Shown: piece after piece, positions 2,166-64,000 of the stretch
Numbering within the stretch: position 1 is the first letter of the stretch
Layout of the letters: every line of letters starts with the position of its first letter
Assembly (NCBI GenBank): GCA_021613535.1
Contig: CP075496.1
Span: 14,880,001 to 14,944,000, forward strand
Length of the DNA stretch: 64,000 bases
Direction of reading: 5' to 3'
From: Adineta vaga
Lineage: Eukaryota > Animalia > Rotifera
Program-made: the position numbers and the translations under genes
The notes under the pieces: generated by a model
Database searches by the model: none
Seen by the model: only the letters and a program-made list of their open reading frames with translations
Told to the model about the DNA's origin: nothing

Positions 2166-2885
2166 TTAAAGGCAAGTTCATTCAAGCTGCTAATATTTCG
2201 AACAGAATTGGTTTTCGAAGATGTGTAATAACCCAGTCGTTGGAAATATGAATAGATAATCCTTCTTTCTTAAGTGGCAAGTTTCGTATCACTTTTTGAG
2301 ATTTATTCTTCGTTTAAGATTGGTCAGATATTAGTTTATCTATAAAAGAAATGAATGCGATCTCAAGTTGGTACGATGCTTTATGAGTCTACTATCGACG
2401 AGATTTCAATACAAAGTACTTGAAGTAACGTGTTTTATCGGAAAATTTGACTGATAGGGAATGGTCAACAACTACTCAGGCGCTTTTTAATTGATATTAT
2501 GTGGAAACCATATGTTTTTACTGGAAAAAAAAACTAAGGAGTGTAAGTTTTAGGTCGATGAATTTGGCCCATTCGTCTCCCCGATCCTCAATTACAGACA
2601 GAATCGAATACACCCACACCTACACCCTGATAAGTTGGTGAGCTTACCTCAGAAAATGCTCATAACTATGATAGAAAGGCTTGAGACAACTCTGTGTTCA
2701 AGGTTTATTACGTCTCAATAAGATGTGTCGAATCTTTAAAACTCCAGCGCAATAACGAATGAACCGCTTTTTAAGCCGTTAACATGAACGTCCATAAACA
2801 GGTGCTAAAAAATATTAATCCATTTTCGTGCCTTTTGGGCGCTATGACGCCCATCTTACAAAAATCTGATTCTTTTTGAACTAAA

Positions 2886-3507
2886 CGAGGAATGATCCTC
2901 AACTGAGCAAAGCGCTTTACAGCCCAGACTCTGTGCATCAAGTAGACCCCCATGAGTTATGAAAAACCCAAAAGCATAGATGCCTGCTAGGTCTATCTTG
3001 GCAGAGTTATAGCCGTTTTATTGAAAATTTCGCCATATAGCTCTGTATAGGCGCAGAGCTGTGATAACACCGTTGAGACCTGAGATTTTTGCTCGAAGAT
3101 TAGGTCTACTTGTAACTAAAATACCCCGAAATTTCAGCTCAAAAGCATGTTCGCCTCATGAGTTGCGTAAGTCTCAAAAATCGTCGACAGTAAGAAATAT
3201 CCGTAAAAATGATGACTTTTTAAGACCTACACATCTCATGAGGCGAACATGCTTTTGAGCTGAAATTTTCAGGGTATTTTAGTTACAAGTAGACCTATCT
3301 TCGAGCAAAATCTCAGGTCTCAACGGTGTTATCACAGCTCTGCGCCTATACAGAGCTATATGGCGAAATTTCAATAAAATGGCTATAACTCTGCCAAGAA
3401 GACCTAGCAGCACCTATGCCTGTGGAGTTTTTCATAGCTCATGGGGGTCTACTTGATGCACAGAGTTCGAGCTGTAAAGCGATTTGTCAGTTGAGGATCA
3501 TTCCTCG
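2886..3507. mobile_element. Foldback MITE (622 bp, CGAGG...CCTCG ends, TAA target duplication)
   Basis: Near-perfect TIRs of ~290 bp. The element is absent at the homologous site in the right arm (~63190), which has a single TAA. Confidence 0.9.
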
Positions 3508-3609
3508 TAAGTAATATTTCATGATCGATTTCATACCAACTGGGAGCCTGTCGAAAGTACAATTCATTGACTTTAGATTTGTATAAAATTGGGCTTTAAA
3601 TGTTTCTTA

Positions 3610-4184
3610 GGAGAGATGGTCACTACATGTTCAACCGTTTTTCGTTAATATTTTACCCATAGGTAGCGGGCTATAACAGTAGAACAATTCTACTAGGATA
3701 TGGGTCGCTAGGACTTTCGCGCCGAGGTAAGAGCTTTCTATCGATTTTTCGCCCTTTTTCCACATTGAACACAAATCTAAATAACGAAGTTTTCGACTGA
3801 AATTTGGGCCGTATATAGGTCTAGCCATCATTAAAGTATTTTGAAAGTTTCAGCCGGAAAAAATGTTCCTATATCGAGATATTGATTTATGAGAAGATAA
3901 TCAATTATAGCCCACTATATGCAAATTATCAGATTACTTCAAAATCCAATATCTCGATAAAGGAACACTTTTTTCGGCTGAAACTTTTAAAATACTTTAA
4001 TGATGGCTAGAACTATATACGGCCCAAATTTCAGTTGAAAACTTCGTTATTTAATGATTTGCTCAATATCGACAAGGGTTAAAAGGTCGGTAAAGAGCCC
4101 ATATCCTCAAAGGATTATTCTAGGCTTGGAGTCTCTAACCTGCGGCCAAAATATCAACTGAAAAGCGACTGGACGGTGAGCTCG
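3610..4184. mobile_element. Older foldback MITE flanked by TTA, present in both arms
   Basis: Inner inverted repeats 3780-3890 / 3940-4052 and TTA at both ends. Counterpart at 62509-63091. Confidence 0.7.
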
Positions 4185-4445
4185 TTATTTCTAAAGAATC
4201 AACTTTTTTTATAAAGTGGGTGTCATAGCGCGCAAAAGCAGGAAAGGATTAATATGAATATTATGATATTCAATCAGAATGTCTTTCAACATTTGATTAA
4301 ATAATATCCTATATATGGTGTACAATACTTTAAAACTGTATAAATAAATTACTTACATTTTTTGAACAAGAAGGACGAACTGAATATTATATATCATTCT
4401 CGCATAAGCGTGATATAATTTAAACATCCGCATTACTTAACCAAC

Positions 4446-5197
4446 CTAGAATTGAGAAAAAATACCGAGTATGGTTGATTTCAACTCTTCCTCTGATGTT
4501 TTACCAATATGAAAATCACGTCCTTGTTTTGTAAAGGCCTTCTCATATTGTTCATGATGCAGCGTGATATTATATTTCTTCATACTACTATCAAGCCATG
4601 TATGAAATATAATGGTCCCTATTTTATTCTACGCGTCGATTCTTCATAAAAAACGAAGATAAAAATAGACGAAACGTGAATAAGTAATAGAAGAGGAGTG
4701 AGAGCGTTCATAGTATTCTGTTTTTTTGTCGATATATCTCACACTATACATTTATACATGACGGTGAAACATTTTATGTTCCGTACAATACTAAACTTGG
4801 TAAAGTGCGGATAACATAAAAGTGAAAAAACTTTATTCGTGCATTGCATAACCTGTAACGACGATTCTATTCTAAAAAAACAACTAAGAGTAATTGAAAA
4901 CTTTAACTAAAACATATTTCTAAGCCATATTTTAAGACTTAACTTGATATGGAGTATTACAGAGTCAGAGAAAGATATGAATTTGTATTTCTACAGAAGT
5001 TTTCGTTCCGAAAAGATTCATTTTTCCGGAATGTAAAATTATTTGTTTCGATATATTTGTATTTGATAGCAACCTAAATCAGAGATGTTTTGTATCTATT
5101 TTGACAACTACCGCAAATTCATTTGAAGTTGAAGTCCATAAGATGTTTCTTACCAAATATTTGTATTGACCATAATCCAAACTCTGACTCTACAAAT
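4446..5197 (-). pseudogene. Decayed coding sequence of unknown family inside the left arm
   Basis: Frame conserved with the right-arm copy (GTIIFHTWLDSSMKKYNITLHHEQYEKAFTKQGRDFHIGK; RVRVWI). Several stops, some shared between copies. Confidence 0.45.
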
Positions 5198-5202
5198 CTG
5201 AA

Positions 5203-5955
5203 AATACGTCTGTTCCAGAACGAATGGATCTCTGAGTATTTTTTACATTTCTCCTTTATCATTCATGTGCTCAATGAACTTTTTTATCAAAAGATAGCGC
5301 TTGAAATTCTCTAAAAACCGTATATGATTGAAACATCACACGTTATTAAACGTATTCGAAAAAAATGATATTCGAGGCGTATAAAAAGGTGTAGAAAGCA
5401 ATGAGCTAAACAGTTGCCTCTCTTGTTCTGCCATTTGCTTCATCTTATTAAACAGATAAAATATGCCAATAGATGCAGCGTGAAAAGCTCTACAGTTTAC
5501 GAAAAACACATTATTTTGAAAAGTTGTAAGAGGAAGATCAATCTATCTTATGACGAAAAGATATAATTTAGTTCGGTTTAAATTTGATCGCTCAAGATTT
5601 TGTTTATTTTAGAATAAAAAGTGCGCCGTATAATAAGTGATTGTGTGTAGTTTGTAGAACTTTTTACGGAGCATCTTGTAATATAATTTTTGTTATGGGT
5701 CGAAATAAGTGAGGAAACAGTAGACTACAAAGGGCGGCTGTTTATTATGACTAATCAACTACTCTTTCTTACTTTTTGTATGTTTCTAATTTCATCCTTT
5801 TCGAACCTGTTTAATAATGTTTTAGGATTCAACTACACAGTTTTGTAGAGAATTTCAAGCGCTATCTTTTGATAGAAAAGTTCTTTTATCACAAGAATAA
5901 TAAAGAAAGAATCTTCAACATACGCATAGGCCCGTTCTTTCTTGGACGCCTATTA
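5203..5955. mobile_element. Degenerate foldback element inserted in the left arm only
   Basis: Inverted repeats ~5250-5335 / 5828-5912 (atcaaaagatagcgcttgaaattctcta). Arm homology stops at ~5205 and resumes at ~5955. Confidence 0.7.
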
Positions 5956-6479
5956 TTTGTATTTTATATCCAAACTGTGACGACAAACTAGATAAATATC
6001 TCATCGCGGCTCATATTATACATGTTTACAAGCTACATCACATATCGAGAATGTTTCTACTTCACAGTAAACTAAACATTCATATAGGAAAGTAGAGAAG
6101 AGTACGAGATGAACAGATCAGAAGATAACAGAGAGAAGAGATGAAATCACTACCGGCGCACGAACCTCTACACTGAATTTTTAAAAATTAGAATTTTACA
6201 CCCGTACAGATCTGCTATACGCACATATAGATGAGCATCATTTATTTATTTAGTCCGACTTTTGCCGTCGACATGTACTTAAAATAAGTTAATATACGAA
6301 AATCGATATCTTTCACTAGAGTAGAAGGCCATACTTTCGAACTAAAGTAATGAAGGTGGACAAAATACATGGCGGCAGTAGTATTTTCTCAATATCGTGT
6401 TCAAAACTCATAGCTTTGAGCTAGTTGTGTTTCTAAAAGATGTTCCGTTCAGTTGATCGGAAAATCATATAAAAGTCAG

Positions 6480-8165
6480 CCCTACAGAGGCAGAAATACA
6501 ACAACGATTTCGGTAATTCCGAGAATATTTTAAATGAGCATGACATAGAAGCAACTCCACCATGGAGGCCGCTGTTCGGCGAGCTCCGTGCCGCTCACAA
6601 GTGTAGATACCGCCGTCTATAAAAAGAACAACACGAAAGAAACCAATCACGAATGTTGCCAAAGATAAGTCATGCCAGTTCGGACGACGACCGATAAAAT
6701 AAGGTCCGCGCCCTCTGTTGAGTCACCAGGACAAAGTCGAAAAATTGGCGGCTGGAAAGAATTCAAATACGACGAAAAACACGCAAAAACTGAAACTTGC
6801 CAAAAATACTCTGACAGTAGGGAAATGGAATTTGTAGACACTATGGGCTGTAGGCAAGCTGGAACGGCTCAAAAACGAAATGAAATGGTTTAGATACGAT
6901 ATAATTAGTATTTCAGAAGTTTGATGGGCAGGAGAAGCGTCCCCACATACGAGGATGGGGTGAGGTTCTCACTGAGCATTCAAGCAAAAAAGGCGTTAAT
7001 AGGTTACTATTCAGTCAGTTCACGAATGATTTCGGCACTATTCGATGCAGCACCATTCAAAATTTTAGTAATACACATATGTACCAACTTCTTCATCTTC
7101 AGAAGAAGATATCGATGCATTCTATAACTATATCGAAGAAGCAATATCAAGGACAGATAAAAAAGACACAATTATCTTGACAGAAGACTGGAACACTAAA
7201 ACTGGTAAGGGTAATATAGATTGGAAATCCTTAATGGGAAAATATGATTATGGCGATAGAAACGGACGGGAAGAACGCCCCTTAGAATTTGCTACAGTGC
7301 ACAATCTCTCCATATGTAATACAAGATTTGAACATAAATCAAATCGAAAGTCGACTTGGGCATCACCAGATGGCAGGCATGAGCTCAGATCATTCATTTA
7401 TATTCCAATCATGTAGCGCTGCTTTAGCGAAACAGCTTAAAAAGATAGACGCAACTGTACCAACAAAAGGAATAGCTAAAAAAAGCCTGGATATCAGAAG
7501 AAACACTAAAACCAGCTGACGACGAACGTAGATTGAAACAGGTAAAACGCGTTTCCTTAAAATATATACAACTATATAAAGGCCTATGTAGAAACGCCAA
7601 GTGATCAGCAAGACAGAACAAAGAATACTAGATGCAAGACTAATATAAGCAAGCTGAAAAGGTCTAAGTATTGGAAATACAAGAGAAGTATATGGTCTCA
7701 TAAAAATGCTCAGTAAAGAATTTGTACTTCAGTTAAATGTCATACGAAGTCAAGAGCGGACAATGCTACAGCCAGACGACGGAATTAAACAAAGGTGGAC
7801 ACAGTATTGTAGCAGTCTGTATAAAGATTCTGGAGGTGGGGACGGCATGGCGAGAGAAATCGAAGACATTGCACCTCCTGAAAACGATAGTCCTCAGGAT
7901 ATCTTGTGCCCAGATTTGCAAGCAGCGGTAAGTTCATTAGAAAGAAATAAGAGTCCGGGATCAGACGGCATGACAGCGTAAATACTACAAGCGGGAGGCG
8001 AACTGCTATCACGTAAAATCCATCAATTCTGTAACAAAGCACAGCAGGAGGATACAATTTCAAAAGAATAGGGCAAATCTATATTGGCCTCTATCCCAAA
8101 GAAAGGAGCAACTGCTCAAACTACCGACCAATCTCTTATATTAATCATACAGGAAAAGTATTATT
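6480..8165 (+). mobile_element. Degenerate non-LTR retrotransposon (APE endonuclease + start of RT, RTE-like)
   Basis: Frameshifted motifs DIISISEV, VSSRMISA, DWNTKTG, NLSICNTRF, TWASPDG, KSPGSDG, IPKKG, NYRPIS..INHTGKVL. The 5' boundary is approximate. Confidence 0.85.
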
Positions 8166-9108
8166 GGGCTTGTTGGCGCAACGCGATACTTTGCTGATCA
8201 AGTTTTGAAAAAACATTTTTTCGAATTTCATTTATTCGAATAGTTTTTTTATGCGGTTTTCACGCTGATTACGAATCTGCCACTCATTTGGCAAACAAGC
8301 GACTTTTTGTTCTAAGAAATTCAGTTTTAAACTTTTCCAAAACCGTATTTTGAAACTTTTGAAGTAAAAACTTTTTCAGAATTATCCGGAAAGGATACTT
8401 TTCGACGCACAATTTCATTTTCTACAAAATGGTGTGTTTACTTTTCATTTTTGTAGTTGTAGGCGATTCATAGACTCTCACACATTTTTCGACTTGCAGC
8501 TCAGTTTAGGAGCTTCCACATTGATGTATCAATCTGATTTTCTAGCAGCATGCTGGTCTCCATTGAAGGACCAACACCTTAAAATATGAGGTCATTTTGA
8601 GCATTTTAAGTGCCTCAAAATTGGTCAACAAAAAATTGTGTCACAACGTTACGAAAAATGTCACAGCATTACGTTTGGACAAGCCCTTCAATGAAACACC
8701 TTTGTAAAAAAAATTTCGAGAAATTTGCTCCAGCTGATCTGCAGAAAGCCTGATTCCAAAATGTATACTGTGCCAAAAAAAGGTGTCACATTGAACCTTT
8801 TTTCGGTAATATTTTCAGAGCCATTTTAGGTTCTAGTTCTAGGGTAAAACCTTTTGTGGCTCACTATTACCCAGTTTTTCCTTAAAAAGTAGGGGAAAAT
8901 GGCGGGAATTCATAATTAAATAGACTTTTTTCAAATGGGCTCGTTAGAATTCGCTCAAACGTTTTCTCAACGACTATTCACCAAGAGCTATCAAAAGCAG
9001 ATGCCAAAAGTTTGGGATCTCTCATTGAGCAGGGTCGGTCGTTGCTTTCGTACAGTGGATCCTAGTTTTGTATCTAGTTTGATCTTGAACGATTCATAAT
9101 TCGGATAA

Positions 9109-10674
9109 CGAGGGATACAATTTAGGTTTCACACTACGATTCAGTTCAATCGTTCATCATCTGATAGAGTATGATGAGGTAGTTAAAAGCTAAAAATATC
9201 ATCGGCCCACAACTCTTTCTCGACACTTTATCCTATGACATGGCAACCCGCAAAGAAAAACGGATATCGACATTTTGATCTGAAATTTTGTTCATAGGTA
9301 AGTCTATCTGTAACTAGAATGTCCTAGCAAATTCAGCTCAAAATAATATTCTCTTCGTAAGATATCATAGTCGCGAAATCGCTCGTATATTAAGAAAAGC
9401 CTGGAGGATGTAAGGCTTCTTTGAGAATGTAATATCTCATGGAGAGAATGTTTTCTTAAGCTGAATTTTCTAGGACATTCTAGTTACAGATAGACTTACA
9501 TATGGATCAAATTTCGGCAAAATAGTTTTGAAAATAATTAGCTGATTTGTGGCAAAATAAAAAATACGTATATTATATTAGTTATACCATCAACAGCAGT
9601 ACTGTTGGTATGGCTATCTTACTAGTCTTAGCGGTTTAGTGCTGTAAGCGGTCTAAGTCTTATGAGGGAACCACCCGAGGTGTCAAAAAGCTTTTCGGTC
9701 GAGATTATGATGGTTAGATAGGCCATAGCTAGGAGTGATATACCCTAAGTTAGTTCGTGCCCAAGTTGAGATCCAGCTGAGATATCGAATTTTTACTGAA
9801 ATTTGCCTATAGGACTACATCTTCCCCATAAAATCAAAGTTTTGGATTTTGAGGTGAGATTTTGTCCATATCAAGGCCTCAGCCAGAGTAGTCCATTCAC
9901 GAACTTTCAGGATTTTTGGACTAAGCATTCTCGAGATCTGAGTGTGTTAACATAAACATAGTTTTTTATAAGTATCGTTGTATGCATAGATATTTTGAAA
10001 ACATTATATCTCGAGAATGCTTAGTCCAAAAATCCTGAAAGTTCGTGAATGGACTACTCTGGCTGAGGCCTTGATATGGACAAAATCTCACCTCAAAATC
10101 CAAAACTTTGATTTTATGGGGAAGATGTAGTCCTATAGGCAAATTTCAGTAAAAATTCGATATCTCAGCTGGATTTCAACTTGGGCACGAACTAACTTAG
10201 GGTATATCACTCCTAGCTATGGCCTATCTAACCATCATAATCTCGACCGAAAAGCTTTTTGGCACCTCGGGTGGTTCCCTCGTTAGACCGCTAAATCAGT
10301 AAGACCGTTTAAATCGCCTAGCTCTAAAATTTCTACACTTCAGTGCTTAGACCATCGCTGAAATTACTTGATTTGATAGATAAATCAGTATTTAGCTCGA
10401 CTTCAATGCTCAACGTAAGATATGTTTTTATCGATTTCACTGAAAATATATCAGCGTTTATTTGAATTTGCAGCAAAATCAAATTCCCCATTAACTCAAT
10501 TTCAGATCAAAATGTTGACATTCGTTTTTTTGTGCGTTGACATGTCATAGGATAAATTGTCGAGAAAGAGTTGTTGGCGGATGATATTTTTAGCTTTTGA
10601 CTACCTCATTATACTCTATCAAATGATGCACGATTCAACTAAATCGGAGTGTGACACCTAAATAGTGTTCCTCG
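9109..10674. mobile_element. Outer CGAGG-ended foldback MITE with nested insertions
   Basis: TAA-CGAGGG...TCCTCG-TAA. TIR pairs 9109-9290 / 10498-10674 and 9290-9380 / 9425-9515. The right TIR is split by an ~1 kb insert. Confidence 0.8.
9663..10282. mobile_element. Young foldback MITE (620 bp, TTA target duplication)
   Basis: TTA-TGAGGGAACC...GGTTCCCTCG-TTA. Nearly perfect TIRs of ~275 bp. Confidence 0.92.
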
Positions 10675-11072: not shown

Positions 11073-11241
11073 GTCATTCAAATGATTAAACAGCTTTTTT
11101 AATATTTTGTAGATGGACCATTCCTCGCTGCTCCTAGACTCCTGAAATGATGAAAAAATGTCCATTCATGTTTTGTAAGGTACTCATTGAATATCTTTTA
11201 CATCTCTGAAGCCGTCTCTAGAATCTCGCATTTATGAAATA

Positions 11242-11735
11242 CTAGCGGAGATATCCGCTGCAAAGAGGACGCAATTTACGTTTTCCACCTACAACAGTGC
11301 TCTTATCATCACCCACCGGACCTCTCTGTAGATATTTATCCGTCGTGTATCAAATAATCCTCACAGCCTCCTTTCCCACCCTGTCTTAGCTAATGTAATC
11401 CTTCAGTTCGTCACTCAGCGCGCGTTATCTGTGTTCCACACGTCTTTCTACTCTGTACTGAGACCCCTCTTACATCCCTTTTCGCGTCATGCTCCAGGTC
11501 TTTTCCCTAGAACTTTTCGCATCTCTTCATTAGTTCTTTCGTACCGGTCTTGTCTATCTATGTATACGACATACAGCTCTGTTCCTTTTATATCCACTCC
11601 TACTGTCCCACTGCATCTTCAGCCTCATTTTTGGACCTAGAGAACCATTGTGAAAAGTTTGGTGACGTTCGCTATTACAGGGACTGAATGCATTGCGGAA
11701 AAACAGACAGACAAACTTTCTTCTTTATATATAGA
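11242..11735 (-). mobile_element. Non-autonomous Helitron
   Basis: On the minus strand it begins A|TCTATATATAAAG..TTTGTCTGTCTG and ends with a GCGGA-tatc-TCCGC hairpin overlapping CTAG|T. Inserted between A and T with no target duplication. Confidence 0.75.
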
Positions 11736-12361: not shown

Positions 12362-15300
12362 ATGAATTCTCTCGAACCAATTGCACTTGTTGGTATTTCA
12401 TGTGAATTTGCTGGAGACATTCATTCACCCGTCGATTTCTGGCAATCACTTCAAGAGAGTCGCGATTTAAGCAGTGATGTACGTGAAGAATGTATGAATT
12501 TGAAGTCTGCTTTTCTGGCACATATGCTAAATCAAGATAATAATGGTAATTTCGAGAAAAAGTTCATTCGCCGAGGTTATTTTCTGTCTACTTCCCAATG
12601 GGACACATTTGAGCCAAGTTTCTTTGGTTTGTCTGATGGTGAAACAGGAACTATTGATCCGTGTCATCGACTTCTTATGCTCAAGTTCGTTCATCTACTT
12701 GAAGATGCTGGCTATACCATGGAAAAAATGCGAGGTTCACAAACATCAGTGCATATAGCTCAGTTCTCTGGAGATCATTCAGTTACATTATCACGACTTA
12801 AACCTGAACAGCGGTCACGATTCCATGGGCCTAATACATTACTGTATAATGCCGCGGCTCGGCTTTCATATCATTTTGACTTACGTGGCCCCAATCTATC
12901 AATGGATGTTGCTTGTTCAGGATCACTTCAGGCCTTACATCTAGCTGTACAGGCCCTGCGCGCAGGTGAAGCAGATATGGCCGTTTGTGGTGGAGTTAAT
13001 TCGGTATATACTCCTGAAAATCTTTTGCATGCTTCAATTCTTGGTGCTATGTCACCCGAGGGGAGAAGTCGATCATTTAGCGCTGATGCCAATGGCTATG
13101 CGAAAGGTAACCGAATCATTTTTCTTATCAGGAAGAGTTCGAAATTGTGGCAATTGATACTTCATTGATAAGATGACTATTTGAGTGCAGAATGTACATG
13201 TATTAGTTTACGTATTCGATCTTGATCATATTGTATAGCGTAAGAGAAGTGAAAAATCGTATGATATTTTTACTATAATCAAGTTTATGCTTGAGGCAGA
13301 GATACTCTATCGACTGAAGTCTTGTTTTAGCCGTTGCTCAGAATATTATTTAATCAGAAAGCGACTTATCAAATTGACTTTTATTTAACTTGATGCATTC
13401 TTTGATCGGATGAAGAATGTTTGAATATTCTTCTTCACTATTGATAATAATATATTCGAAACTACTTTTTGCAAGAGAAAAGTGAATAAACGTTTTGCTG
13501 GAACCTATCAAAACAACTTTTAAAATGGCTATCTAACTGTTCTATATAAATAGAACGCTTAAATATTCTTTTGTTGTCGATGAATAAGTAAATAATTTCC
13601 TTAGAAAAGAATGTAGATATTTTATGCCAGTTTTTCTTTTCATAATTCGTTTCTTAGTATACATAATTTCGAACGTACTAGCTATGTTTATTAATTTGCA
13701 GAACCGAAAAATTTTGTTTATAGAGAGAAAGTAATCCACTCCAGTATTGCCTAACATAAATAGACAAATTCTAAAACTTTTCATATATTCTCTTTTAAAA
13801 GGTGAAGGTCTGGGGCTTGTTCTTTTGAAACGATTGAGTGATGCTGAACGCGATGGTGATCGAATTTATTGTGTGATACGCGACATTCTCAGTAATCATG
13901 ATGGCTGCGACGGTAAAAATAGTTATGTTGTTCCTTCCGAATCTGGTCAACAACAGCTGCTTAACCAGGTGTATAGTCGAACTCAATATGATCCAAGTCG
14001 TATCTTCTACGTTGAAGCACATGGAACAGGAACATTAGTCGGTGATCCAATTGAAGCAAACACACTTGGACGTTTCTTTAATAGGTCTTCATTTGATCCT
14101 CCACTTCTTATTGGATCAGTCAAAAGTAATATTGGTCATACAGAAGGAACAGCCGGTGTTGCTTCTCTTATCAAAGCAGCTCTTTGTATGCGGTATCGAG
14201 CCATTCCACCTAATTTAAATTTCTCAACACTCAATCCGAAAATTGAAGCGAAACGCTATAATCTTCACGTAGTTCAGAGTATGGTGCCGTTTCCATCAGA
14301 TGATGCTGCAAGTCTAGGTCAGCCAGTAGCGCTTGGAATTAATTCATTTGGAATTGGTGGTAATAATGCACACGCCATAATTGAAGAGTACAAACAACCT
14401 AAGCGTTTAACAAATGGATATGCGAAAGCAGAAGTACAAGATTTATTACAGTATCGACAACATTTTCTTTTTGTTTTTTCAAGTAAGTTCTCATATACTT
14501 ATATAAATAGTCATCATTGTTTCATGCTGTTCTATTTTTCCTTCTATTTTTCCAATAGGCAAAAGATATGAATCACTTCAGAAACAAATAGCTCAATTTA
14601 ATGTCTGGCTACAACATGCTCTATCAAACAAGGATAGAGATGAGCATTCTTTACTCATGCGTATCTCCCAACATCTACTTCTTAAACGAACGCTCAGTTA
14701 TGAACATTTCGCTATATTCGTGTCATCTGAAAGTAAACAATTACAAGAACAGGTTGCTTCTTTTTTGGCCGAGCAACCATCAATACCTGGTCTTTTAGTT
14801 TCAAAATCTGCTTTACCGTTCAATGGTGATCGTCGTATATGTTTTGTTTTCAGCGGTCAAGGGCCTCAATGGTGGGCAATGGGACGGCAATTATATACGA
14901 CAGAACCTATTTTTCAAAAATGGATTAAGAAGATCGATGAAGAATTAATTAAGGTTAATAACAATGAATGGAGTCTTTTGCATGAATTGATTGAAAAGAA
15001 CAGTGAACATGAATCCCGTATCAATGATACAAATATTGCTCAGCCAGCCCTATTTGCTGTACAAGTTGGTCTTGCAGCTCTCCTTGTCTCGTGGCATATT
15101 TTGCCATCGGCAATTGTATCACATAGTGCTGGAGAACAAGCGGCTGCATTTGTTGCAGGTCGTATATCATTAGAAGAAGCAGTTCGTATTGTTTATCATC
15201 GATCTCGTCTTCAACATCGAAATACACGGCAAGGTGGTCGAATGTTAGCCGTGGGAATGAGTGAACAAGAAGCACGTGAACATTTACTCAATGGTGTAGA

Positions 15301-42400: not shown

Positions 42401-42549
42401 ATTAAACATATGATTTATTTTCTCAGTTCATATAAAGAGCACGGCCAAGCGTTAGGGAATTTCATTTTTTCAACTTGCGAGATACGTGTCTTCTCAATAA
42501 CAAAAGAGATGTCTCTGAAATTTTAGGCGTATATGAAGACTAATCAGCT

Positions 42550-44130: not shown

Positions 44131-44132
44131 CA

Positions 44133-46189: not shown

Positions 46190-46980
46190 TTTTAGATAAA
46201 ATACTTCCCCACTTTGAAGCCACTATAAACTACTGACGACGAGTTGCAATCTACGAATTCTAACCAGATTTTTTCCTCCTTCATAATATAGGTCTGTAAT
46301 TTTTTTGTCAAGTCTTATTTGGGAGTAGTAAAATTATCTTAGACGTGATATATTTATATCTGTTCAAGAATACTGAACGAGGTTTTGAGAAGTTCATAGA
46401 ATTTTTTCTAATGGTGAACCGATAGTTTTACCTTCTTGTAAGTTCCTTTTCGATCATAGTAAAAGCTGTCAGTGCCAATTTTTTCGTAGAGCAAATGCAT
46501 CTTTAGAAAAAATGTTGTCGAAGTAAGTTATAGCTTATAGCTAAGGGGAAACTATAACCATTTTATCAAGAAATTTTTCTAGGCCCCATTTTTACTATAA
46601 AAAAGAATGCTTTTTTTCGTAAAATAATTAGCTGAGAAGAATGAATATTGTATCACCATATCGAAGCACAAACAAATACTGAAATAGAGAATCTGGTAGA
46701 GCACGTTCTACTGTACAAATTCAAATAAAAATGAGGGCTTCGATTTTCGGTTCTCACTCATAATGATTATCGAAAATAAAAGGTCAGCAAAAATAGTTTT
46801 TTCAAACCACCGTTTTGAATTTTTCAAAGTCGGTTTTACTGCTCCCAAATAAGGCTTGATAAAAAAATTATAGATCCATATTCTGCAAGAGAAAAAAATC
46901 TGGTCATAACTCGTCGCTTACAACTTGGCTCTGGCAGTTTCTAGTGACTCGAAAGTGAGAAAATCTTCTGTCTAAAAATA
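46190..46980. mobile_element. Degenerate foldback element just upstream of the ABCB start
   Basis: Inverted repeats ~46190-46335 / 46832-46980 (ccagatttttt, tcaagtcttatttgggagtagtaaaa). Confidence 0.7.
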
Positions 46981-47118
46981 TTCGGCTACCCATTACTAGC
47001 GTCAAAATGGAGAATGAGCGAAACTATTAAAATCAAACCAACGGTCATACGGATATGGCGTGACTATAGTTGTTAATGTATTATTTAAAAGAATAATCTA
47101 TTTAGACAAAAATATGCA

Positions 47119-53100: not shown

Positions 53101-56100
53101 CACTATTAATACATATATTCTCCTTTATTCTATCGAATACATTTATCAGTTGATGTTACTGCTAGTTCAAATCAAATAGCTCAACATTATTAAAAGGTTA
53201 ATGGACTGAAAAATGATAAGGAAAGTTAATAGTTATAACCGAACTTATAACTATTTTAAGTTTTCAGACAATAGTTTTAACCCACATACTGATTTAGGTA
53301 TGACAAAGAACTAGATTCAACTCACTGGAGTAGTATTCGTAAAGGTGTAGTGTTTGGTGTTTATATGGGTTGGATGGCCTTTCTGGTCTACTTAGTTTAT
53401 GCTGTTGGTTTCGTTTTTGGCGCGATTCTCATGTCATCTGCAGATCGTCATGTCGCCAGCATTAATCATATTCTGGTGGTAAGATGGCGTGAAGACAGAA
53501 CAATCGAAAACAATGCTATAACTGACGAGATTCATTTTATATAGATTGTAATGTTATATGCGCAATTTGTCCAGCTGTTCGGTCTCATTGGTCCTCTCTT
53601 TCAGTCATTTTCGGAAGGTCGAGGAGCAGCAGAACCTGTATTTCGATTGATTGAAGAGGTAAAGGCGACATAATGAAAGTCGTATGATCATAACGATATG
53701 ATTTTATTATATCAGGAACAAAATATATGTGTCAATGAATATGATGTATTGAACGAGGATAAATTCAAAGGCGAATCAGTTACGGATCTTATCGGTGATA
53801 TACAATTTCATCATGTCAGTTTAGTTTATCCATCTCGAAAAGATGCAACAGCATTGAATGATCTTAATGTGATATTTCGTGCTAATAAAACAACTGCATT
53901 GGTTGGTTCGAGTGGTTCTGGTAAATATTTGTTTTAAGCAAATATTTTAATTATTGAAATCTGATTATTTATTGTTGTCAGGAAAAAGCACATGTATTTC
54001 ACTTCTTCTTCGTTTCTATGAACCTTCATCTGGTCAAATAACTATCGATGACCGACCACTTACAGACTATGATATAAAAAAGCTTCGACAAAGTATTGGC
54101 GTTGTTAGTCAAGAACCCGTATGTTTTTTTGTTCTTCTTCTTCGGTTCTGTTTGTTTTTAATGTTGTTTTGAAATAGATTTTATTTAGTATGAGTATTTA
54201 TGAGAATATTCGTTTCGGTCAACTCAATGCAACACGTCAAGAGATCGAAGCAGCAGCTAAAGAAGCCAATGCACATAATTTCATTATGAAACTACCTGAT
54301 GTTTGTATTTATTGTTAGCGAACGTGCGTAGTATGAGTCTGAGTTCTTTAGGGATATGAAACATTGACTGGTGAACATGGTGTACAGTTAAGTGGAGGTG
54401 AAAAACAACGTATTGCCTTAGCTCGTGCATTGGTGAAACAACCTAGTATATTATTGTTGGACGAAGCAACAAGTGCTCTCGATAATGTTAGTGAGAAAAT
54501 TGTTCAAGAAGCACTTGATCGAGCATCGAAAAGTAATGTACCCTTATTCTTTTGTTATCTCTTATTTTACTGAGATGATAAAGGGAAATTCCTAATTGAT
54601 TTGTGAGCTAAATTTTTCTGTGATACACCCATGCAGCGAAGCACTTCGTGTACGACAATCAATGTCTGCTCCTCTCTCACGCATATAGTAGGAAAGTTAC
54701 AAGCTCAGAAATATGCTTTTGAAAAAAAAACAAGAAATAAACACATTTCTCTAGAAATCACATAAAAGTTTCTTTTACTTAAAATAAAGTTTCTTAATAT
54801 TCACTCTTTGAGGACCGGAGACGCATATGTGCGTTTAGATTGATTTCTTCAAAAATAAGTAAATAGAAATGAATTCAATAGTGAACACCCGTCCGTATGT
54901 ATAAATTCATATACAATGCAACAAACATATGCTATTGAACTGCGCTCTATACAAAATATGCGTACTTAGAGGTAGTTAACTAATTTTATTTTGTTATGTT
55001 TGATGCGTTATGGTTTTTAGAAGAAAATAATATGGCCTTCAAAGGGCTAACTAATAAGATGAAAATCGATAAGAGCCACTATTCATAAACTTGGTTTCGT
55101 TTAGCTTGTAACGCCTTTTTTGACAGACATCGAAAATATTTGCTATTATTACTTCAAGAATTGAACGAAACAATGTAGATATCATATGCGCAGATGTATC
55201 GGCTGTTGAAAATGTCTTGAGAATCATGAAAGAAAAAAAATAACAGGGAGGCATTTTACAAGTTTGATGAGTTAAGATGATTTTCTTAACTTAGAAAGGC
55301 AAAACAGCAGAGCAGAGAACTATGGAAGAAATAGTAGAAAATACACATGAATGTCTGGTAAAAAAGGTGTTACAAGCTAAACGAAACCAAGTTTATGAAC
55401 AGTGGCTCTTATCGATTTTCATCTTATTAGTTAATATTAAGAAACTTTATTTTAAGTAAAAGAAACTTTTATGTGATTTCTAGAGAAATGTGTTTATTTC
55501 TTGTTCTTTTTTTCAAAAGCATATTTCTGAGCTCGTAACTCTCCTACTATATGCGTGAGAGAGGAGCAGACATTGATTGTCGTACACGAAGTGCTTCGCT
55601 GCACGTTTGTGTCCCAGAAATAAATTTTCAAATAAGCATCTCAACACAGAAGAATTTATCACACAAATCGAGTTGAGATTTCTGGTACGGTCAACATATT
55701 ATCTATACTTAGATCGTACTACTATTGTCATTGCTCATCGTTTGAGCACGATTAAAAATGCTGATCATATCTATGTGCTAGACAACGGAAGATTCATTGA
55801 AGAAGGTACACATGAAACTTTGATAGCCAAAGAAGATGGTAAATATGGAACAATGATAAAAGCTCAGCAAATGACAAGAATGATTGATGAAGATCGAAAT
55901 GATCTAATGAGTACGATAACCACTACAGCTGAAGATCAAAAACAAATATGTATATAAAAGTTTAAATAAAAATTATTCAGATTTATTTCAATACTTTATC
56001 TATTGTCTAGCACAACGAACTCATGCACTGAGAGAAGGTGAACTTCTCACTACAGATCAAGTAAATATTGATGCACTAATATTAGAACTAAGAATTTCTT

Positions 56101-58658
56101 TTGCAGAAGGATACGACATCAGTCGAACAAAACAATATATTTCGAAGACTCTTAGCAATGAATAAATCCGAATGGGTTACTATCTTAGTTGGTTGTTTAG
56201 CATGTGTGTTCAATGGTTTGACCCAACCATTATTTGCAATATTATTGACTAAAATCATCAATGTAAACATCTCATCAAGTTCTATAAAACTGTTCAACAG
56301 TTAAAACTATGTCTTTTTGTATGTTTAGGCATTTAAAGATTGTGGATATGGAAATATACACTATCAAGTATTTGTGGCCAGCTTATTTTTTTTAGTCTTA
56401 GGTGTGATGGTCTTGTTCCTTTTTTTCTTTCAAGTAAGAATTCTTTTTGTCAAGAACCGAAACGATGGGAATTATATTGTTGTTCTAATTGATATTTTTC
56501 TTCCTTTCAGTTTATGGCTTTTACTATAGCAGGATCCAGATTAGTTCGACGTATTCATTCGAAAGCATTTGCATGTCTTCTCCGTCAAGAAATAGCTTAT
56601 TTTGATCGACCAGAGAACAGTTCGGGTGCTATATGTGCTCGTCTGACTGCCAATGCAACAGCTCTACAAGACATGATTGGAAATAGATTAGGTGCCATCT
56701 GTGAAGCTTTGGCTTTATCCGGTTTTGGTGTGCTATTTGGTTTTATTTTCAGTTGGCAACTCGCTCTCATGTCCGTAGTGCTGCTTATTATTCTGCTTGT
56801 GGTTAGCTCTATCAGTATATATTTGAGCACAATTATAAAAGAAAAATGCGATCGCTATCGCAGTCAAGCCAATTCAGTAGGTCTTTTTCGTGTTTGAAAC
56901 AGCTCAATATTAAAGATGCTAGTGAATGTTGTTTCTTGGTTTTAGCTTGCTATGGAAGTTATTCATAATATGCGTACGATCAAACAATTATCTGTTGAAA
57001 ATGAAGTTTTACAACAGTATACTGACTCGATTCAGCAAGTATTGAAGTATGTTTTGAAACGCAGATGCTATTTTATACATATCGAACAGAATTAATATTG
57101 ACTAAGTTTGTTTTGCTCATGTAGAACGTCTTTGAAATTCAATGTTCTGATGGCTCTGTCAACTGGTATAGTTTGGTCCATAAGTCCGTTGATAATGGCA
57201 CTTTTCTATTGGAGTGCTATTATCCTTATTGAAAATCATAAACTAGCTTCAAATGAGATGATCATGTAACGATACTCATAGTTGAACTAAACTGACAAAA
57301 AATGCTTTAATCTTTGAACTTTTCTAGGGTTTTTGCTTTTGTTATATTTACATTACAATCATTCATAATAATCGGCACACTGTAAATAAGAAAATCAGCC
57401 ATTTCGTTAGTGATTTGTGTGTTCCTGTGATTTTAGATCAGATCGTATTGGACAATCGATTTCTGCTGCACAGATCTTTTTTGATATATTCGACCGAACA
57501 CCATCGATTGATAATACATCTACCCAAGGACAAGAATTAGTAAGAGGACACTTCATTAATCGTTTGTACAATATGTTTTATCTAGAGTGATTTCCGTGGA
57601 GATATAGACTTTGATCAAGTGAAATTTGTTTATCCCACTCGACCTGCATCTGCTATTCTTAACAAATTTCAATTAAATATCAATTTTGGTAAGCAAAGCA
57701 AGAGAAATTCCCTTAAGTAGTTTTTTTAAATTTTTCTTCATTTTCCATCTTTGCTTAGGTCAACGTATCGCTCTTGTTGGTAAGTTGGAATTTATCCGAT
57801 CAATCTTTATTACAGAATATTATTCATATAGGGACATCGGGGTGTGGAAAATCGACTGTTATTCAACTATTAGAACGATTTTATGATATTACACAAGGAC
57901 AATTAGTAAGTCAGGAGATTGTCATTAAAAGCTGCTAGAATTGAACTGTTAAACATTTAGTTTCTTGATGGAGTGGATATTCGACAACTAAATGTGCAAT
58001 GGCTTCGTTCTCGTCTTGGTCTTGTTAGTCAAGAACCTGTTTTATTTGATATGACCATTGCAGAAAATATTATATATGGATTAGAAAATATTCCCATAGA
58101 AGAGATCATTAATGCTGCAAGTAAAGCTAATATTCATGAGTTTATTCAACAGTTACCACAGGTTAGGGTCTACGAAATGATATTGATAATTGTTTAATAA
58201 TGTCTAATACGATTATATACGTAGGGCTATGAGACAAGAGTTGGTGTTAAAGGTAGTTTTATGTCTGGAGGAGAAAAACAACGTATTGCTATAGCAAGAG
58301 TACTTCTTCGTCGGCCCAAAATCTTATTACTAGATGAAGCAACAAGCGCCATGGATTCATTTAACGAGCAAGTAAGTGGCTGTTCGTTTTTCTGTTGATT
58401 ACTTTATTTGTTATCTTGATTCCATCATTCGAGATTGTTCAAGAAGCACTTGATCAAGCTCAGAAAGAAGATCCAAGCCGAACATCGATTATCATTGCAC
58501 ATCGTCTGTCGACAATTCGTTCTTGTGATGCAATCTATGTACTTGATCAAGGTCAGATTGTCGAGATTGGCAATCACACTGAATTGGTGCAACAACGCGG
58601 AATATACTATAAAATGCTTCTGGCACAAAATAATCTGCAAAACTATGATACGATGTGA
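47119..58658 (+). CDS. Full-length ABCB1/MDR1 (P-glycoprotein)-like ABC exporter, ~29 exons
   Basis: Predicted start MTDKEY at 47119; VGLTKL|[12 protein letters not shown]; two TMDs. NBD1 [40 protein letters not shown]; NBD2 [33 protein letters not shown]. Exons traced in frame. Large introns 48685-52547 and 54533-55712. Confidence 0.92.
50968..51318. mobile_element. Possible piggyBac-type MITE in ABCB intron 5
   Basis: TTAA-TCCTTTAAG...CCCCAAAGGG-TTAA. Confidence 0.45.
54610..55625. mobile_element. Foldback element in ABCB intron 14
   Basis: TIR pairs 54632-54800 / 55433-55603 and 55048-55130 / 55350-55433. Confidence 0.85.
54804..55046. mobile_element. piggyBac-type MITE nested in the left TIR of the foldback
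   Basis: TTCA-CTCTTTGAGG...CCTTCAAAGGG-CTAA. The opposite TIR shows the empty site as a single TTAA. Confidence 0.7.
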
Positions 58659-59036
58659 AATTCATTCAATCATTTTTTATTTTTCGACTTTTCTAGTGTA
58701 ATAAAAAGATGACCAATAGAACCTCATGCACTAAAAAATTCGATGTTACATAGAATTTTTGAAGGTTTGATACTATTTTATGACATAGTTTTAAGTTTTT
58801 ACTATGAAAATCATTTCGCCGTATTCATACAGAGCTTATTATAATTCCGAAATCGAAAGAAAAAGATTTTTACTGCACATATAATGGATAGCAAACATAT
58901 AAAACTATATTCCATCTTGAGATACCGGCTGAACAATGCCAAAAAGTTCATTTTCTATTGCTACCTGTTAGACAAAAAGTAATATGGTCAAATTATTAGT
59001 TGTGTTTTTAATTCTGGCACTAGATCAATTCGTCGC

Positions 59037-59056
59037 ATATATATATATATATATAT
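59037..59056. repeat. (AT)n microsatellite
   Basis: Run of about 10 AT units. Confidence 0.85.
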
Positions 59057-59705: not shown

Positions 59706-61507
59706 TTAACAAATAAGTGCGCTGAAAAAGAACAAATTTACATTATCTAACCGTCAAATATCGTTTTGTAGTAGCTTTCAGTATGTATAGTACACATTTT
59801 GTTTATTACTAAACGTATGTCGTTAGCTAATTATTACACCACAGTATAGGTGTCTTTTATAATTGAGTAAAAGTGAAAAATTATATATCGTGTATAATGC
59901 TGATATTTTTTGTAAAGTAACCCTTTAAACAACAGACGACATAATAAATATAAATTGACTAGAGCATTTTGTTACAGAATAATAACATTATGGTCCTCAA
60001 TTTTGAAAAAAACTGCTCCCTTCCGATAAACTTCTGATTTTTAAGTTGTTGATACGACCACATTACTTTATTGTTTTTAGGGTACAGCAGAGTGAGGGAA
60101 ATGAGCAAAAATAAGTGAATCAACCTGTATAGGGGTACAGCCAGCTATAGGTCACCCTAGCATCGAGAAGATTCGAATTGAAGTGTACAGGAAACCTGAT
60201 ATATCAGATGAAAGGTCATGAACGACTGTCTTTAAAACATGTATGATTACCTCTTGTAAATTGAATTGTGATCTAGTGCTAGGATGTGTGCGCAGTAACT
60301 ATTCTCTCTTAAATTAATTGGTCGACCCTTGGTGTACAATTTGTCTCCGAAACGCTGGGTATATGACATCACTCGTCTTCTAATAAAACAATCTGACATT
60401 TTAGAAGCTCGTTTGAGGCTGAACGACTTTTATACAGAATGTTTATTGAAAAGCCACTCCATTTCGGAATGAGCTACTAAACTCTCGGCTGCTCTAAGAA
60501 AAATTCTCTAACAGCCAATATTTTCTAGAAAACTCAGTTCTGGCGAAAGAAAAATAAATGAAATTATTATCATTCATAAAGTTAACTGAGATCCATTCAC
60601 GGTGAGAATTGCAGTGAATTTGTTATAATTACGGAAGAGATATAGATATTAAAATACGAGAGATAAAATTCCCTCACACTTGATCATGCCAATATGTAAT
60701 CGAGTTAAAGGATGAAAATTATTTAAATGCACTTGAACGATCAGTTTTTTTTTCTATACTTCGATCAATCATCTTTATTACTCAGAACAATTGAATATAA
60801 AAAAACAGGAAAACACGACCGCTTGTAATATGTGATTGGTTCGATTAATTAAATTTCTGTTAGTGTAGATTGGATGACTCGATCGGAAAGTATCATTTTG
60901 TAAAACAAATCATGTTTTTTTGGATGACTCTTGTATTATAGATTGACCAAGAAAACGAAATCAAAGTAAGGGTACAATCGATCCTATAAAATACACTAAC
61001 GGTCTTGATTCTGATCGTTGAAACAAATATTACTGAAAAACAAGATCAGCGAAAGTTCGATTGTCAAAACAAACGATTCTATGAAATTCGAACACTTATA
61101 TTGATGGCCCCTATTTCGATTATATTTTTTTCGACGGTTTAGTCTTTTCATTGTATTCATTTCGGCGATGAGGCATACAGTTACTTTAATTCTTTTTTAA
61201 TTATAGATTGACTGTGGCAGTCGATATAAACGACACGTCTACTTTAACCGATTAACTATCGGTAACGTATAAATAAACATATTCATGCATTTATACGTCG
61301 CCGACAGTTAAACAAACACATGTGTAGTCAAGATTCTACACGATGACATCTGTGCTAAGCCATGTTAGATTTAGAGTGTGTACTCGTGGTCAGATCTTGT
61401 TTTGTTTCGTAAAAACCGTTTTTGTTTACAGTTTATAACGTGAGCGACGGTGAGCTACTAGTTCAGTTTTTCGGTACAGTTATGATACAAAATATGAATA
61501 TTTTCAG

Positions 61508-62264
61508 TTCTTTAGAGTCAGAGTTTGGATTGCAGACGACGCAGATATATAGTAGAAAAGATCATATCTGTTGCTACTTGCAATGAATCTGCAGCAGTTA
61601 TCGAAACAGATACATGATGCATCTAATTCAGAAAGCTACTACATACGCTTGTGTCGGAACAAAGAGTGGATAATTAGACATTGCAGAGTGCCTGGTTTTG
61701 GTCGATAAAAACTCTCAATAAATAAAAATCCATATATTATTCTGACTCTGTAATAGTCCATTTATAATTATGTCTGGAGAGATGATTTAGAAATATAGTT
61801 TTTTTTAAAATTTTTTAGCTGCTCTTAGTCGTTCTCAAGGTGAGAATCATTGTTTTACGTGATACAATGTATGAATATCGCTTTCTCACTTTCCTTCTAT
61901 CCATACTTTACCTAGTACAGTATTGTACAGAACGTCAAAATTCTTATCGTCGTGTGTGAATGTCTACTGTGAGATGTGTCGATAGAAGGAAGAATATTTC
62001 AATACTATTTGTCGTTCTTCGATTACCTATTCACGCTTCATCGATTTTTACCTTCGTTTTTTATGAAGAAACGACGAGTAGAATAATATAGGGGCCATTA
62101 CATTTCATATACAGCTTGATAGTAGTATGAAGAAATATAATATGACGCTGCATCATGATCAATATGAGAAGGCCTTTACAAAACAAGGACGTGATTTTCA
62201 TATTGGTAAAATATCACAGAAAGAGTTTCAATCCACCGTACTCGGTATTTTTTCTCAAATCTAG
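61508..62264 (+). pseudogene. Right-arm copy of the decayed unknown coding sequence
   Basis: RVRVWIADDAD..MNLQQLSKQI and GAITFHIQLDSSMKKYNMTLHHDQYEKAFTKQGRDFHIGK, with stops. Confidence 0.45.
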
Positions 62265-62508
62265 GTTGGTTAAACCATATCACACTTATGGCAAAATGAT
62301 ATATCATACATAATCTATTCTTGTAGCTAAAAAATGTAAGTAATTTATCTATGTAGTTGTGAAGTATTATGCATTATATATATCGTAATATTTGATAAAA
62401 TCCTATAAAACATTTTGATCGAATACTATAATATTCATATTAATCCTTTCCTGCTTTTGCGCGCTATGACACCCACTTTATAAAAAAAAGTTGGTTCTTT
62501 AGAACTAA

Positions 62509-63091
62509 CGAGAGAGAATCACTCACTGTCCAATCGCTTTCCAGTTGATATTTTGGCCGCAGGTAAGAGACTCCAAGCCTAGAATATTCCTTTGAGGATA
62601 TGGGCTCTTTACTGACCTTTTATCCCTTGTCGATATTGAGCAAATCATAAAATAACGAAGTTTTCAACTGAAATTTGGGCCGTATATAGGTCTAGCCACC
62701 ATCAAAGTCTTTTGAAAGTTTCAGCCGAAAAAAGTGTTCCTTTATCCAGATATTGGATTTTGAAGTAATCTGACAATTTGCTCATATTGTGCTGCAAGTG
62801 ATTATCTTCTCATAAATCAATATCTCGATATAGGAACATTTTTTGGCTGACACTTTTAGAATAGTCTAATAATGATTAGACATACTAATGGCCCAAATAT
62901 CACTTGGAAACTCCGTTATTTAGTTTTTTGTTCAATGTAGAGAAAAGTGCGAAAAATCGGTAGAGAGCCCATAACTCGGCGCCAAAGCCCTAGCGGACCA
63001 TATCTTCGTGAAATTGCTCTACTCTTATAGCGCCCTACCTATGGGTAAAATATTAACGAAAAACGGTTGAACATTTAGTGACCATCTGTCC
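62509..63091. mobile_element. Right-arm copy of the TTA/TAA-flanked foldback MITE
   Basis: TAA-CGAGAG...GTCC-TAA; homologous to 3610-4184. Confidence 0.65.
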
Positions 63092-64000
63092 TAAGAAACA
63101 TTTAAAACCCAATTTTATAGAAATCTAAAGCCAATGAATTGTACTTTCGACAGGCTCCAAGTTGGTATGAAATCGGTCCTGAAATATTACTTAGTTAAAA
63201 AAGAACCAGATTTTTGTAAGACGGGCGTCATAGCGCTCAAAGGGCACGAAAGGATTAATATTTTTATGCATCTGTTTATGGACGTTAATGTTCACGACTT
63301 AAAAAGCTGTTCATTTGTTATTGCCTTGGAGTTTTGAAGATTCGACACATCCTATTGAGACGTAATAAACCTTGAACATAGAGTTGTCTCAAGCCTTTCT
63401 ATCATAGTTATGAGCATTTTGCGAGGTAAACTCACCAACTTATCAGTCGCTTTTGGGTTGATATCCTAGTTATAGGCAAGAGACTATAAGACTCGAATAG
63501 TCCTAGGAAAAATCAGAACACTAGGCCTTTTGTGTGGAGTTATGGATTTTTAGCCGCTTTTTCAGTATTGAGCGAAAACGCTTTTCAGCGCAACTTCTTT
63601 GGGACTAAAATGTGGAAGTCACATAGCCTGTTTGCGATTATAGCGTGTACGCGCGATGAGGCTCTACGTGAAACTGAGTTACACCTAAAATGGAGTTTTA
63701 TGTTTTATAAGTTTGCGCTTGTGATGAATTCTGTCTGTAATGGAGGATCGGGGAGACGAATGGGCCAATTTAATCGACCTAAAACTTACACTCGTTAGTT
63801 TTTTTTTCAAGTAAAAACATATGGGTTCCACAAAATATCAATTAAAAAGCGCCTGAATAGTTGTTGACCATTCCCTATCAGTCAACTTTTACGATAAAAC
63901 ACGTTACTTCAAGTACTTTGTATTGAAATCTCGTCGATAGTAGACTCATAAAGCATCGTACCAACTTGAGATCGCATTAATTTCTTTTATAGATAAACTA

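Follow-up and report, generated by a model that had tools for sequence, protein, structure and literature searches.

Two inverted copies of a dispersed subtelomeric duplicon bracket a PKS-NRPS-ABC gene block of Adineta vaga, a bdelloid rotifer

What are the long inverted repeats that bracket a block of biosynthetic genes near one chromosome end of Adineta vaga, and did they bring the genes there? The locus is a 64,000-nt stretch (the window, C4:14,880,001-14,944,000) in the six-contig, 100.8-Mb assembly of this bdelloid rotifer, which represents a single haploid genome. The window lies ∼280-345 kb from the right end of C4 (15,224,634 bp), has a GC content of 32-40%, and carries genes for a highly reducing polyketide synthase (PKS), a multimodular nonribosomal peptide synthetase (NRPS) and an ATP-binding cassette (ABC) transporter. 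An earlier note, made from the letters of the window, had described an inverted duplication around all three genes and had offered three readings of it: the long terminal inverted repeats (TIRs) of a giant cargo-carrying element, an inverted segmental duplication made during break repair, or an inversion-prone cassette with ongoing conversion between its arms. We examined the window together with 20 kb of extra sequence on each side, and all positions are given in window coordinates, such that negative numbers and numbers above 64000 refer to the flanks. The explanation that we prefer, and hold to be probable, is that the arms are two old copies of a subtelomeric duplicon that sit in inverted orientation, and that their outer part was homogenised by gene conversion bounded by indel heterologies.

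The inverted duplication is real, and is larger than the 3 kb or more originally described: once the flanks are included, each arm extends for ∼5.9 kb. Between the arms lies a segment of 56.3 kb, close to the 55 kb estimated earlier, which holds the PKS, the NRPS and the ABC transporter gene. The arms and the features within them are the following.

-716 to 5206 (1 to 5206 inside the window), minus strand: left arm, a copy of a dispersed subtelomeric duplicon, paired with the right arm
61499 to 67350 (61499 to 64000 inside the window), plus strand: right arm, with family homology to at least 67494 and an inner end that is truncated relative to the family
5207 to 8653, minus strand: inward continuation of the left duplicon copy, with no counterpart in the right arm
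1885 to 2165: 69-bp minisatellite of the left arm, 4.1 units
64167 to 64723, just outside the window: 69-bp minisatellite of the right arm, 8.1 units
63447 to 63727, plus strand: 282-bp segment (the first heterology), kept in the right arm and in other family copies, deleted in the left arm
2609 to 2627, minus strand: interstitial telomere-like repeat of 18 bp, TACACCCACACCTACACCC on the plus strand, which replaces the 282 bp
2886 to 3506: palindromic insertion of 621 bp (the second heterology), similar to a miniature inverted-repeat transposable element (MITE), left arm only
62594 to 63086 (left-arm counterpart 3728-4103): nested foldback element, at the same position in every family copy

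Repeat searches and self-BLAST recover the arms as colinear inverted matches, of which the outermost within the window is 2332-2604/63728-64000 (96% identity); the others are 2627-2884/63191-63446 (91%) and 3508-5206/61499-63193 (80.5%). These matches are far above chance, with bit scores of 360-1569, and of 4507 when the flanks are included. The homology runs past the window, where positions -694 to 2165 match 67299 to 64443 at 95%, and an inverted match of 97.6% pairs 1883-2604 with 64449-63728. The earlier note was thus right about colinear inverted arms and less so about their limits, since the right arm starts at 61499 rather than at about 61000, and the left/right pairing ends at 5206 rather than at about 6470; the left copy of the repeat family does itself reach ∼6600, beyond the end of the pairing. 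Following the sequence past position 64000 in search of true ends and a target-site duplication (TSD), as had been recommended, places the ends of the arms at -716 and 67350 by pairwise alignment, beyond which there is only patchy similarity, to about -1015/67640. No direct repeat or TSD is present at these limits, which are themselves imprecise (flanking sequences TTTATTAGGA on the left and GCTTTTCTTC on the right).

Three structural differences separate the arms, namely the 621-bp insertion, the replacement of 282 bp by 18 bp, and the number of minisatellite units. The minisatellite is found in every family copy, with a variable number of units. The 621-bp insertion has a TIR of at least 21 bp (CGAGGAATGATCCTCAACTGA), is flanked on both sides by TTA, and is 90% self-complementary. 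It is the sole full copy in the genome, where its relatives are only 64-72% identical, and in its sequence features it resembles PIF/Harbinger elements. The nested foldback likewise has relatives elsewhere in the genome, which occur as solo elements.

The arms belong to a dispersed family. Used as queries against the whole genome, the inner half and the outer half of the right arm returned nine further copies of ∼5-6 kb (76-87% identity), which brings the family to at least 11 members with the left and right arms included; all such counts are lower bounds. The earlier note had named dispersal of the arm sequence as a finding that would speak against its account of the bracketed cluster, and dispersal is what we observe. 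The members identified by nucleotide search are located as follows.

C1 at 67 kb, 255 kb, 550 kb and 17.35 Mb: arm-family copies
C2 at 15.92, 16.01, 16.08, 16.09 and 16.15 Mb: arm-family copies
C4 at 14.88-14.95 Mb: arm-family copies corresponding to the left and right arms

Judging from their positions, the high-coordinate copies on C1 and C2 probably lie near chromosome ends as well. Relative to the nearer chromosome end, eight of the nine other copies point the same way, the exception being C2 16.09M: the three at the left end of C1 are oriented one way, and the high-coordinate C1 and C2 copies the other, save for C2 16.09M. For a right chromosome end the orientation of the left arm is the usual one, which makes the right arm the odd one out. 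Most of the other copies (seven of nine) are solo, and only C2 16.08M and 16.09M form another inverted pair. This pair is a palindrome, with arms at C2:16077863-16085885 and 16091604-16099626 and a spacer of at most 5.7 kb, and its arms are 99.1% identical over the full 8 kb compared per side, flanks included. Since the flanks on both sides share in this homology, the C2 pair is to be read as a recent inverted duplication, not as TIRs.

The copies have neither shared ends nor equal extents. Their inner ends, expressed in the coordinates of the left copy, fall at 5206 (the right arm), 5583, 6046, 6553, 6602 and 8653, and the outer ends are at 67288, 67350, at least 67494 and ∼-1889, so that the boundaries differ from copy to copy (flanking sequence of the other copies was compared over ∼1.5 kb only). 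The full left copy runs from ∼-1889 to ∼8653, and the right copy only from 61499 to ∼67494. Of the inward continuation of the left copy, the part at 5207-6602 is common to most family copies, and the part at 6602-8653 is colinear with C1:61163-63481 and C2:15923564-15926926; overall, the left copy stays colinear to 8653 with C1:61163-76207 and C2:15917193-15926926. On the outer side, homology between the left copy and the flanks of the copies at C2 16.08M, 16.09M and 16.15M and at C1 550k resumes after a gap and reaches ∼-1889, and the right copy continues to ∼67494 with those at C1 17.35M and C2 15.92M only. The inner breakpoint at 61499 is also where alignment starts for C1 67k and C2 15.92M, both of which extend further along the left copy. 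These alignments indicate that the duplicon measures at least 10.5 kb, that the left copy carries it more fully, and that the right arm represents a truncated 6-kb piece. With copy ends this unequal and ragged, the limits of left/right homology are simply the places where the shorter or more diverged copy gives out.

This family has the properties of a subtelomeric duplicon, in that its copies occur at several chromosome ends, have ragged and copy-specific boundaries, and share nested composite content. Since the foldback and the minisatellite are in register in all copies, and solo relatives of the foldback occur elsewhere, the arm unit was already composite when it spread, which points to duplication at the DNA level and not to transposition. 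No open reading frame (ORF) longer than 130 aa is present in any copy, and no Rfam family was detected in the window, its flanks or three other arm-family copies; nor were any tRNA genes found that could have served as integration targets. A Penelope-like, Athena or Terminon retroelement was considered as a source of the arms and rejected, as the arms contain no reverse transcriptase (RT) or Rfam family and only short, degenerate telomere-like stretches, though a highly decayed remnant of such an element could still be present.

The divergence between the arms is a mosaic. When the eleven copies are aligned and the left and right arms are compared in 200-bp steps, the arms differ by ∼5% in the outer 3.6 kb and by ∼20% in the inner 2 kb. 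As the earlier note had observed, the arms are most alike at the outer end and become less so inward: identity is 0.93-0.99 from position 63825 of the right arm outward, and proceeding inward it falls through 0.92, 0.86, 0.81 and 0.73 to 0.66. Outward of 63825, every other copy is at most 0.90-0.95 identical to either arm; in the inner part, other copies are as close to each arm as the arms are to one another, or closer. Eight perfect left/right tracts of at least 100 bp, the longest of 150 bp, occur within the 3.6 kb that are ∼95-97% identical.

Phylogenies of the separate segments follow the same division. In maximum-likelihood (ML) trees, the two arms are sisters in the outer segment (64730-67290; support 100/100, path length 0.057) and in the mid segment (63187-64160; support 100), but not in the inner segment (61720-63186), where the path between them is 0.22. 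There the left arm is nearest to C2 16.15M (0.16), and the right arm groups with C1 17.35M (84/94), its own nearest copy being 0.22 away. Distances across the family as a whole are alike in the inner and outer segments, whereas the divergence between the left and right arms differs fourfold. The pattern supports one half of the third original reading, that of conversion between the arms, in that the divergence is mosaic and the arms are sisters only in their outer part.

The main step in this mosaic is sharply placed. A single ML changepoint falls at position 63728 of the right arm (likelihood-ratio test statistic 552), with raw mismatch of 4.6% on the outer side and 26% on the inner side, the latter being inflated by misalignment around indels (the BLAST segments give 91% and 80.5% identity). 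Global pairwise alignment is unreliable at 63190-63830 because of the two indels, and the BLAST segments were used there. Position 63728 is the outer edge of the 282-bp/18-bp replacement, and the 18-bp sequence therefore coincides with the step in divergence. The next drop in identity, from 91% to ∼86%, coincides with the MITE-like insertion found in the left arm only. Steps in divergence at indel heterologies are the pattern expected if conversion tracts between the arms ended there.

Read in the orientation of the right arm, the left arm has ...ACTTATCAG, GGTGTAGGTGTGGGTGTA, TTCGATTCTGTCTG... at the first step, whereas ACTTATCAG and TTCGATTCTGTCTG are separated by 282 bp in the right arm and in the other copies. 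The bdelloid telomere repeat is (TGTGGG)n (PMC8494291), and given this resemblance the 18-bp sequence looks like the scar of a break that was repaired with telomerase-added repeats. On this interpretation, a double-strand break in the left copy would have led to the loss of 282 bp, the addition of a few repeats by telomerase, and rejoining.

The following history would account for these observations. A non-coding duplicon, at least 10.5 kb long in its fullest form, would have reached several chromosome ends through segmental duplication and ectopic exchange, not through transposition, and two of its copies would happen to sit inverted, 56 kb apart, enclosing the PKS, NRPS and ABC genes. At a later time, the arms would have undergone non-allelic gene conversion with each other, which homogenised the outer 3.6 kb and left ∼5% divergence. 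The conversion tracts would have been halted at heterologies, initially at the 18-bp scar/282-bp indel and then at the 621-bp MITE-like insertion of the left arm, and the inner 2 kb would have retained its old divergence of ∼20%. Membership of the family, the unequal extents of the arms, the lack of termini, TSD and mobility genes, and the mosaic with its step at the scar are direct observations; gene conversion as the cause of the mosaic is inferred, as is the role of the heterologies as barriers to it.

Several points weigh against this history. Conversion is deduced from a pattern, and the subtelomeric position of the high-coordinate C1 and C2 copies is likewise deduced. For the inner segment, the approximately unbiased (AU) test does not reject monophyly of the left and right arms (p = 0.164), so that the trees do not prove a discordant topology, and it is the fourfold difference in divergence that carries the argument. 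In addition, inner left/right identity drops gradually (0.94 to 0.66) with no flat plateau, which calls for several conversion events or for extra decay at the inner end of the right arm.

The same AU result leaves room for a single local inverted duplication, in which template switching or break-induced replication during double-strand break repair copied ∼6 kb of the left duplicon across the cluster, and in which ectopic conversion by other family members afterwards replaced the inner parts, or those parts decayed faster. Several findings would fit: in family coordinates, the whole of the right arm falls strictly within the extent of the left copy; over 3.6 kb the two arms group as sisters; a repair scar of telomere repeats is present in the left arm; and the C2 palindrome is another large inverted duplication in this genome. 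However, a donor that overwrote one arm after the duplication should be less than 0.057 from the converted part, and the nearest copies are at 0.16 (left arm) and 0.22 (right arm); faster decay does not explain the fourfold difference, as inner and outer rates are similar across the family. We therefore regard this explanation as rather unlikely. The suggestion in the earlier note of an inverted segmental duplication from break repair may hold loosely, for the arms are duplicated subtelomeric DNA with a telomere-repeat scar, but not as one recent duplication, which cannot explain arms that differ by 5% on the outside and ∼20% on the inside. It is far less probable still that one arm is an assembly artefact, i.e., a misplaced or mis-oriented haplotype copy of the other. 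Palindromes in the 2013 assembly of this species (AV13) did arise from the scaffolding of phased haplotypes (PMC8494291), and subtelomeric haplotypes can be expected to diverge to an extent that covers the ∼5% difference of the outer 3.6 kb. Against this, 56 kb of unique, gene-bearing sequence separates the arms, which differ by ∼20% in the inner 2 kb as well as by the three structural differences given above, and each arm joins its own distinct unique flank without Ns.

The most striking of the original proposals, in which the arms are the long TIRs of a ∼68-kb giant cargo transposon or composite element that brought in the PKS-NRPS-ABC cluster, now has almost no credibility. The arms do face outward and bracket the whole cluster, their family is multi-copy, and C2 has another inverted pair whose members are placed alike relative to each other. 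There are, however, no shared termini, as beyond -716 and 67350 the arms continue separately with different family members, and no TSD is found at the flanks. The arms are unequal, the right one being without at least 1.4 kb of inner family sequence. The genome has a single PKS-NRPS core, most of the other family copies (seven of nine) stand alone, and the C2 pair is a near-perfect palindrome with homology through both flanks. Nor was an enzyme of mobility detected: Pfam searches of 101 ORFs (at least 62 aa) that lie apart from the PKS and NRPS, those in the in-window parts of the arms included, found only ABC-transporter domains and two P-loop cross-hits. They gave no transposase, integrase, recombinase or RT; in the outer 3.3 kb of each arm, beyond the window, the check covered long ORFs only. 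The earlier statement that no transposase lies inside the arms thus holds at the Pfam level, and the claim that an animal carries a complete biosynthetic cluster inside a giant TIR element is removed.

Subtelomeric duplicons in human, as low-copy segmental duplications shared among chromosome ends, were reportedly described by Linardopoulou et al. in 2005 (as cited in PMC11258130). The 48-kb FLNA-EMD segment at human Xq28 is flanked by 11-kb inverted repeats and undergoes inversion mediated by non-allelic homologous recombination (NAHR). The present arms are like the Xq28 repeats in being multi-kb and inverted, in enclosing a gene-bearing segment of ∼50 kb, and in being kept similar by what appears to be conversion; unlike them, they are only 95-97% identical at best, with a longest perfect tract of 150 bp, and ∼80% identical elsewhere. 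The arm family resembles subtelomeric duplicons of human and A. vaga (PMC8494291) in forming multi-kb non-coding blocks at several chromosome ends with 76-99% identity, and also in its patchwork structure, copy-specific breakpoints, nested transposable elements (TEs) older than the spread, interstitial telomere repeats of short length and signs of ectopic conversion. What sets this locus apart from the usual subtelomeric duplicon is that two inverted copies surround a 56-kb biosynthetic block, and that a sharp apparent conversion boundary coincides with a telomere-repeat scar.

Two kinds of mobile system invite comparison as well. The one documented case of TE-mediated mobilisation of an NRPS gene in A. 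vaga involved ∼200-bp Penelope pLTRs, an 8-bp TSD and an allelic empty site (PMC3846280). The two cases share the species and an NRPS-type gene between repeated flanks, one of them inverted, but the present arms are composite, non-coding and 5.9 kb long, and have no TSD and no detected Penelope sequence or ribozyme. Giant or composite transposons with long inverted ends include the foldback-flanked ‘TE’ elements of Drosophila, Mavericks/Polintons and Terminons (PMC6431247). Here too, tens of kb in a telomere-proximal position are enclosed by long inverted repeats that contain tandem subrepeats; in contrast to those elements, the locus has no defined termini, TSD or element-encoded enzyme, its arms are unequal, the would-be cargo is single-copy, and the other copies are mostly solo.

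The locus matches published descriptions of A. vaga subtelomeres, which are ‘dynamic’ regions with many rearrangements, repeats and foreign (horizontally acquired) genes (PMC8494291), and in which most of the ∼40 nonribosomal peptide (NRP)/PKS clusters of this species are situated (PMC11258130). It exemplifies how a bdelloid subtelomere is constructed, with duplicons, MITEs, a telomere-repeat scar and apparent non-allelic conversion around NRP/PKS genes of horizontal origin. For bdelloid specialists, a probable conversion tract that ends exactly at a telomere-repeat scar should be of particular use.

Nothing suggests a function for the arms themselves. With 3.6 kb at ∼95-97% identity, they have the length and similarity that NAHR requires, and it is plausible on these grounds that they could act as a substrate for inversion of the cluster by non-allelic recombination; such a pair could drive inversion or loss of the cluster. 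We consider it doubtful that the pair is a working recombination substrate that flips the 56-kb cassette, giving an orientation polymorphism among A. vaga lineages or between haplotypes, or that, as a duplicon common to several chromosome ends, it supplies the homology by which whole biosynthetic cassettes would move between the subtelomeres of an asexual animal.

The enclosed block, which probably derives from horizontal transfer, contains the following genes.

12362 to 23172, plus strand: highly reducing PKS, with KS-AT-DH-MT-ER, then a 1.39-kb intron or insert, then KR-ACP
24400 to 36197, minus strand: multimodular NRPS
∼46330 to 58707, plus strand: ABC transporter gene, with many introns and repeats

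The PKS contains an ORF of 1842 aa that matches a hypothetical protein of A. vaga, I4U23_021842 (AV20 model), at 100%. It has no close paralog in the genome (at most 48% amino acid identity), and a protein search found no ortholog in other bdelloids (best homolog at most 51%). Since there is no close paralog of the PKS, the combination of arms and cluster occurs once, and no second genomic copy of the PKS-NRPS block exists. The ABC transporter gene does have a paralog, at C2:16055742-16039255, which is colinear and ∼82% identical in the matched stretches. This paralog sits among the C2 copies of the arm family, with neither a PKS nor an NRPS beside it. As homology with C2 ends at the end of the gene (58707), and the nearest C2 arm copy is 27 kb off, this arrangement is no proof that the position of the right arm is ancestral.

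Further observations concern the genes of the block. The 1.39-kb intron or insert of the PKS (20186-21570) has GT/AG-type borders and lies between the coding parts for ER and KR-ACP. It carries head-to-head telomere-like repeats, G-rich at 20336-20353 and C-rich at 20390-20432. The public PKS model (2350 aa) is without KR and ACP, both of which are encoded in a separate ORF at 21571-23172. In the NRPS, two sets of direct repeats (26746-27225/30267-30746, 99.4%; 27612-28376/31137-31901, 91%) represent duplicated modules. Between the NRPS and the ABC transporter gene, the region 42200-44200 is GC-richer, has a strong AT skew and contains minus-strand ORFs of 114-171 aa with no Pfam match, and may be an uncharacterised gene within the bracketed segment.

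Other repeats occur inside and just outside the bracketed segment, and a PLP-dependent decarboxylase is encoded outside the left arm. A foldback at 38225-39432 is built of perfect inverted repeats of 526 bp around a 156-bp spacer, and another at 9657-10288 has a 298-bp inverted repeat (96%) with a 36-bp spacer and further copies at C1:16310176 and C4:14855010. A repeat of ∼390 bp is present in direct orientation at 11240-11629, just upstream of the PKS, and at 68832-69221, just outside the right arm; it has at least 40 copies genome-wide at ∼85% identity. Finally, a non-LTR retrotransposon with an endonuclease (Exo_endo_phos, APE) and an RT lies on the minus strand at 69635-72374, 2.3 kb outside the right arm, and is accompanied by short telomere-like stretches on either side.

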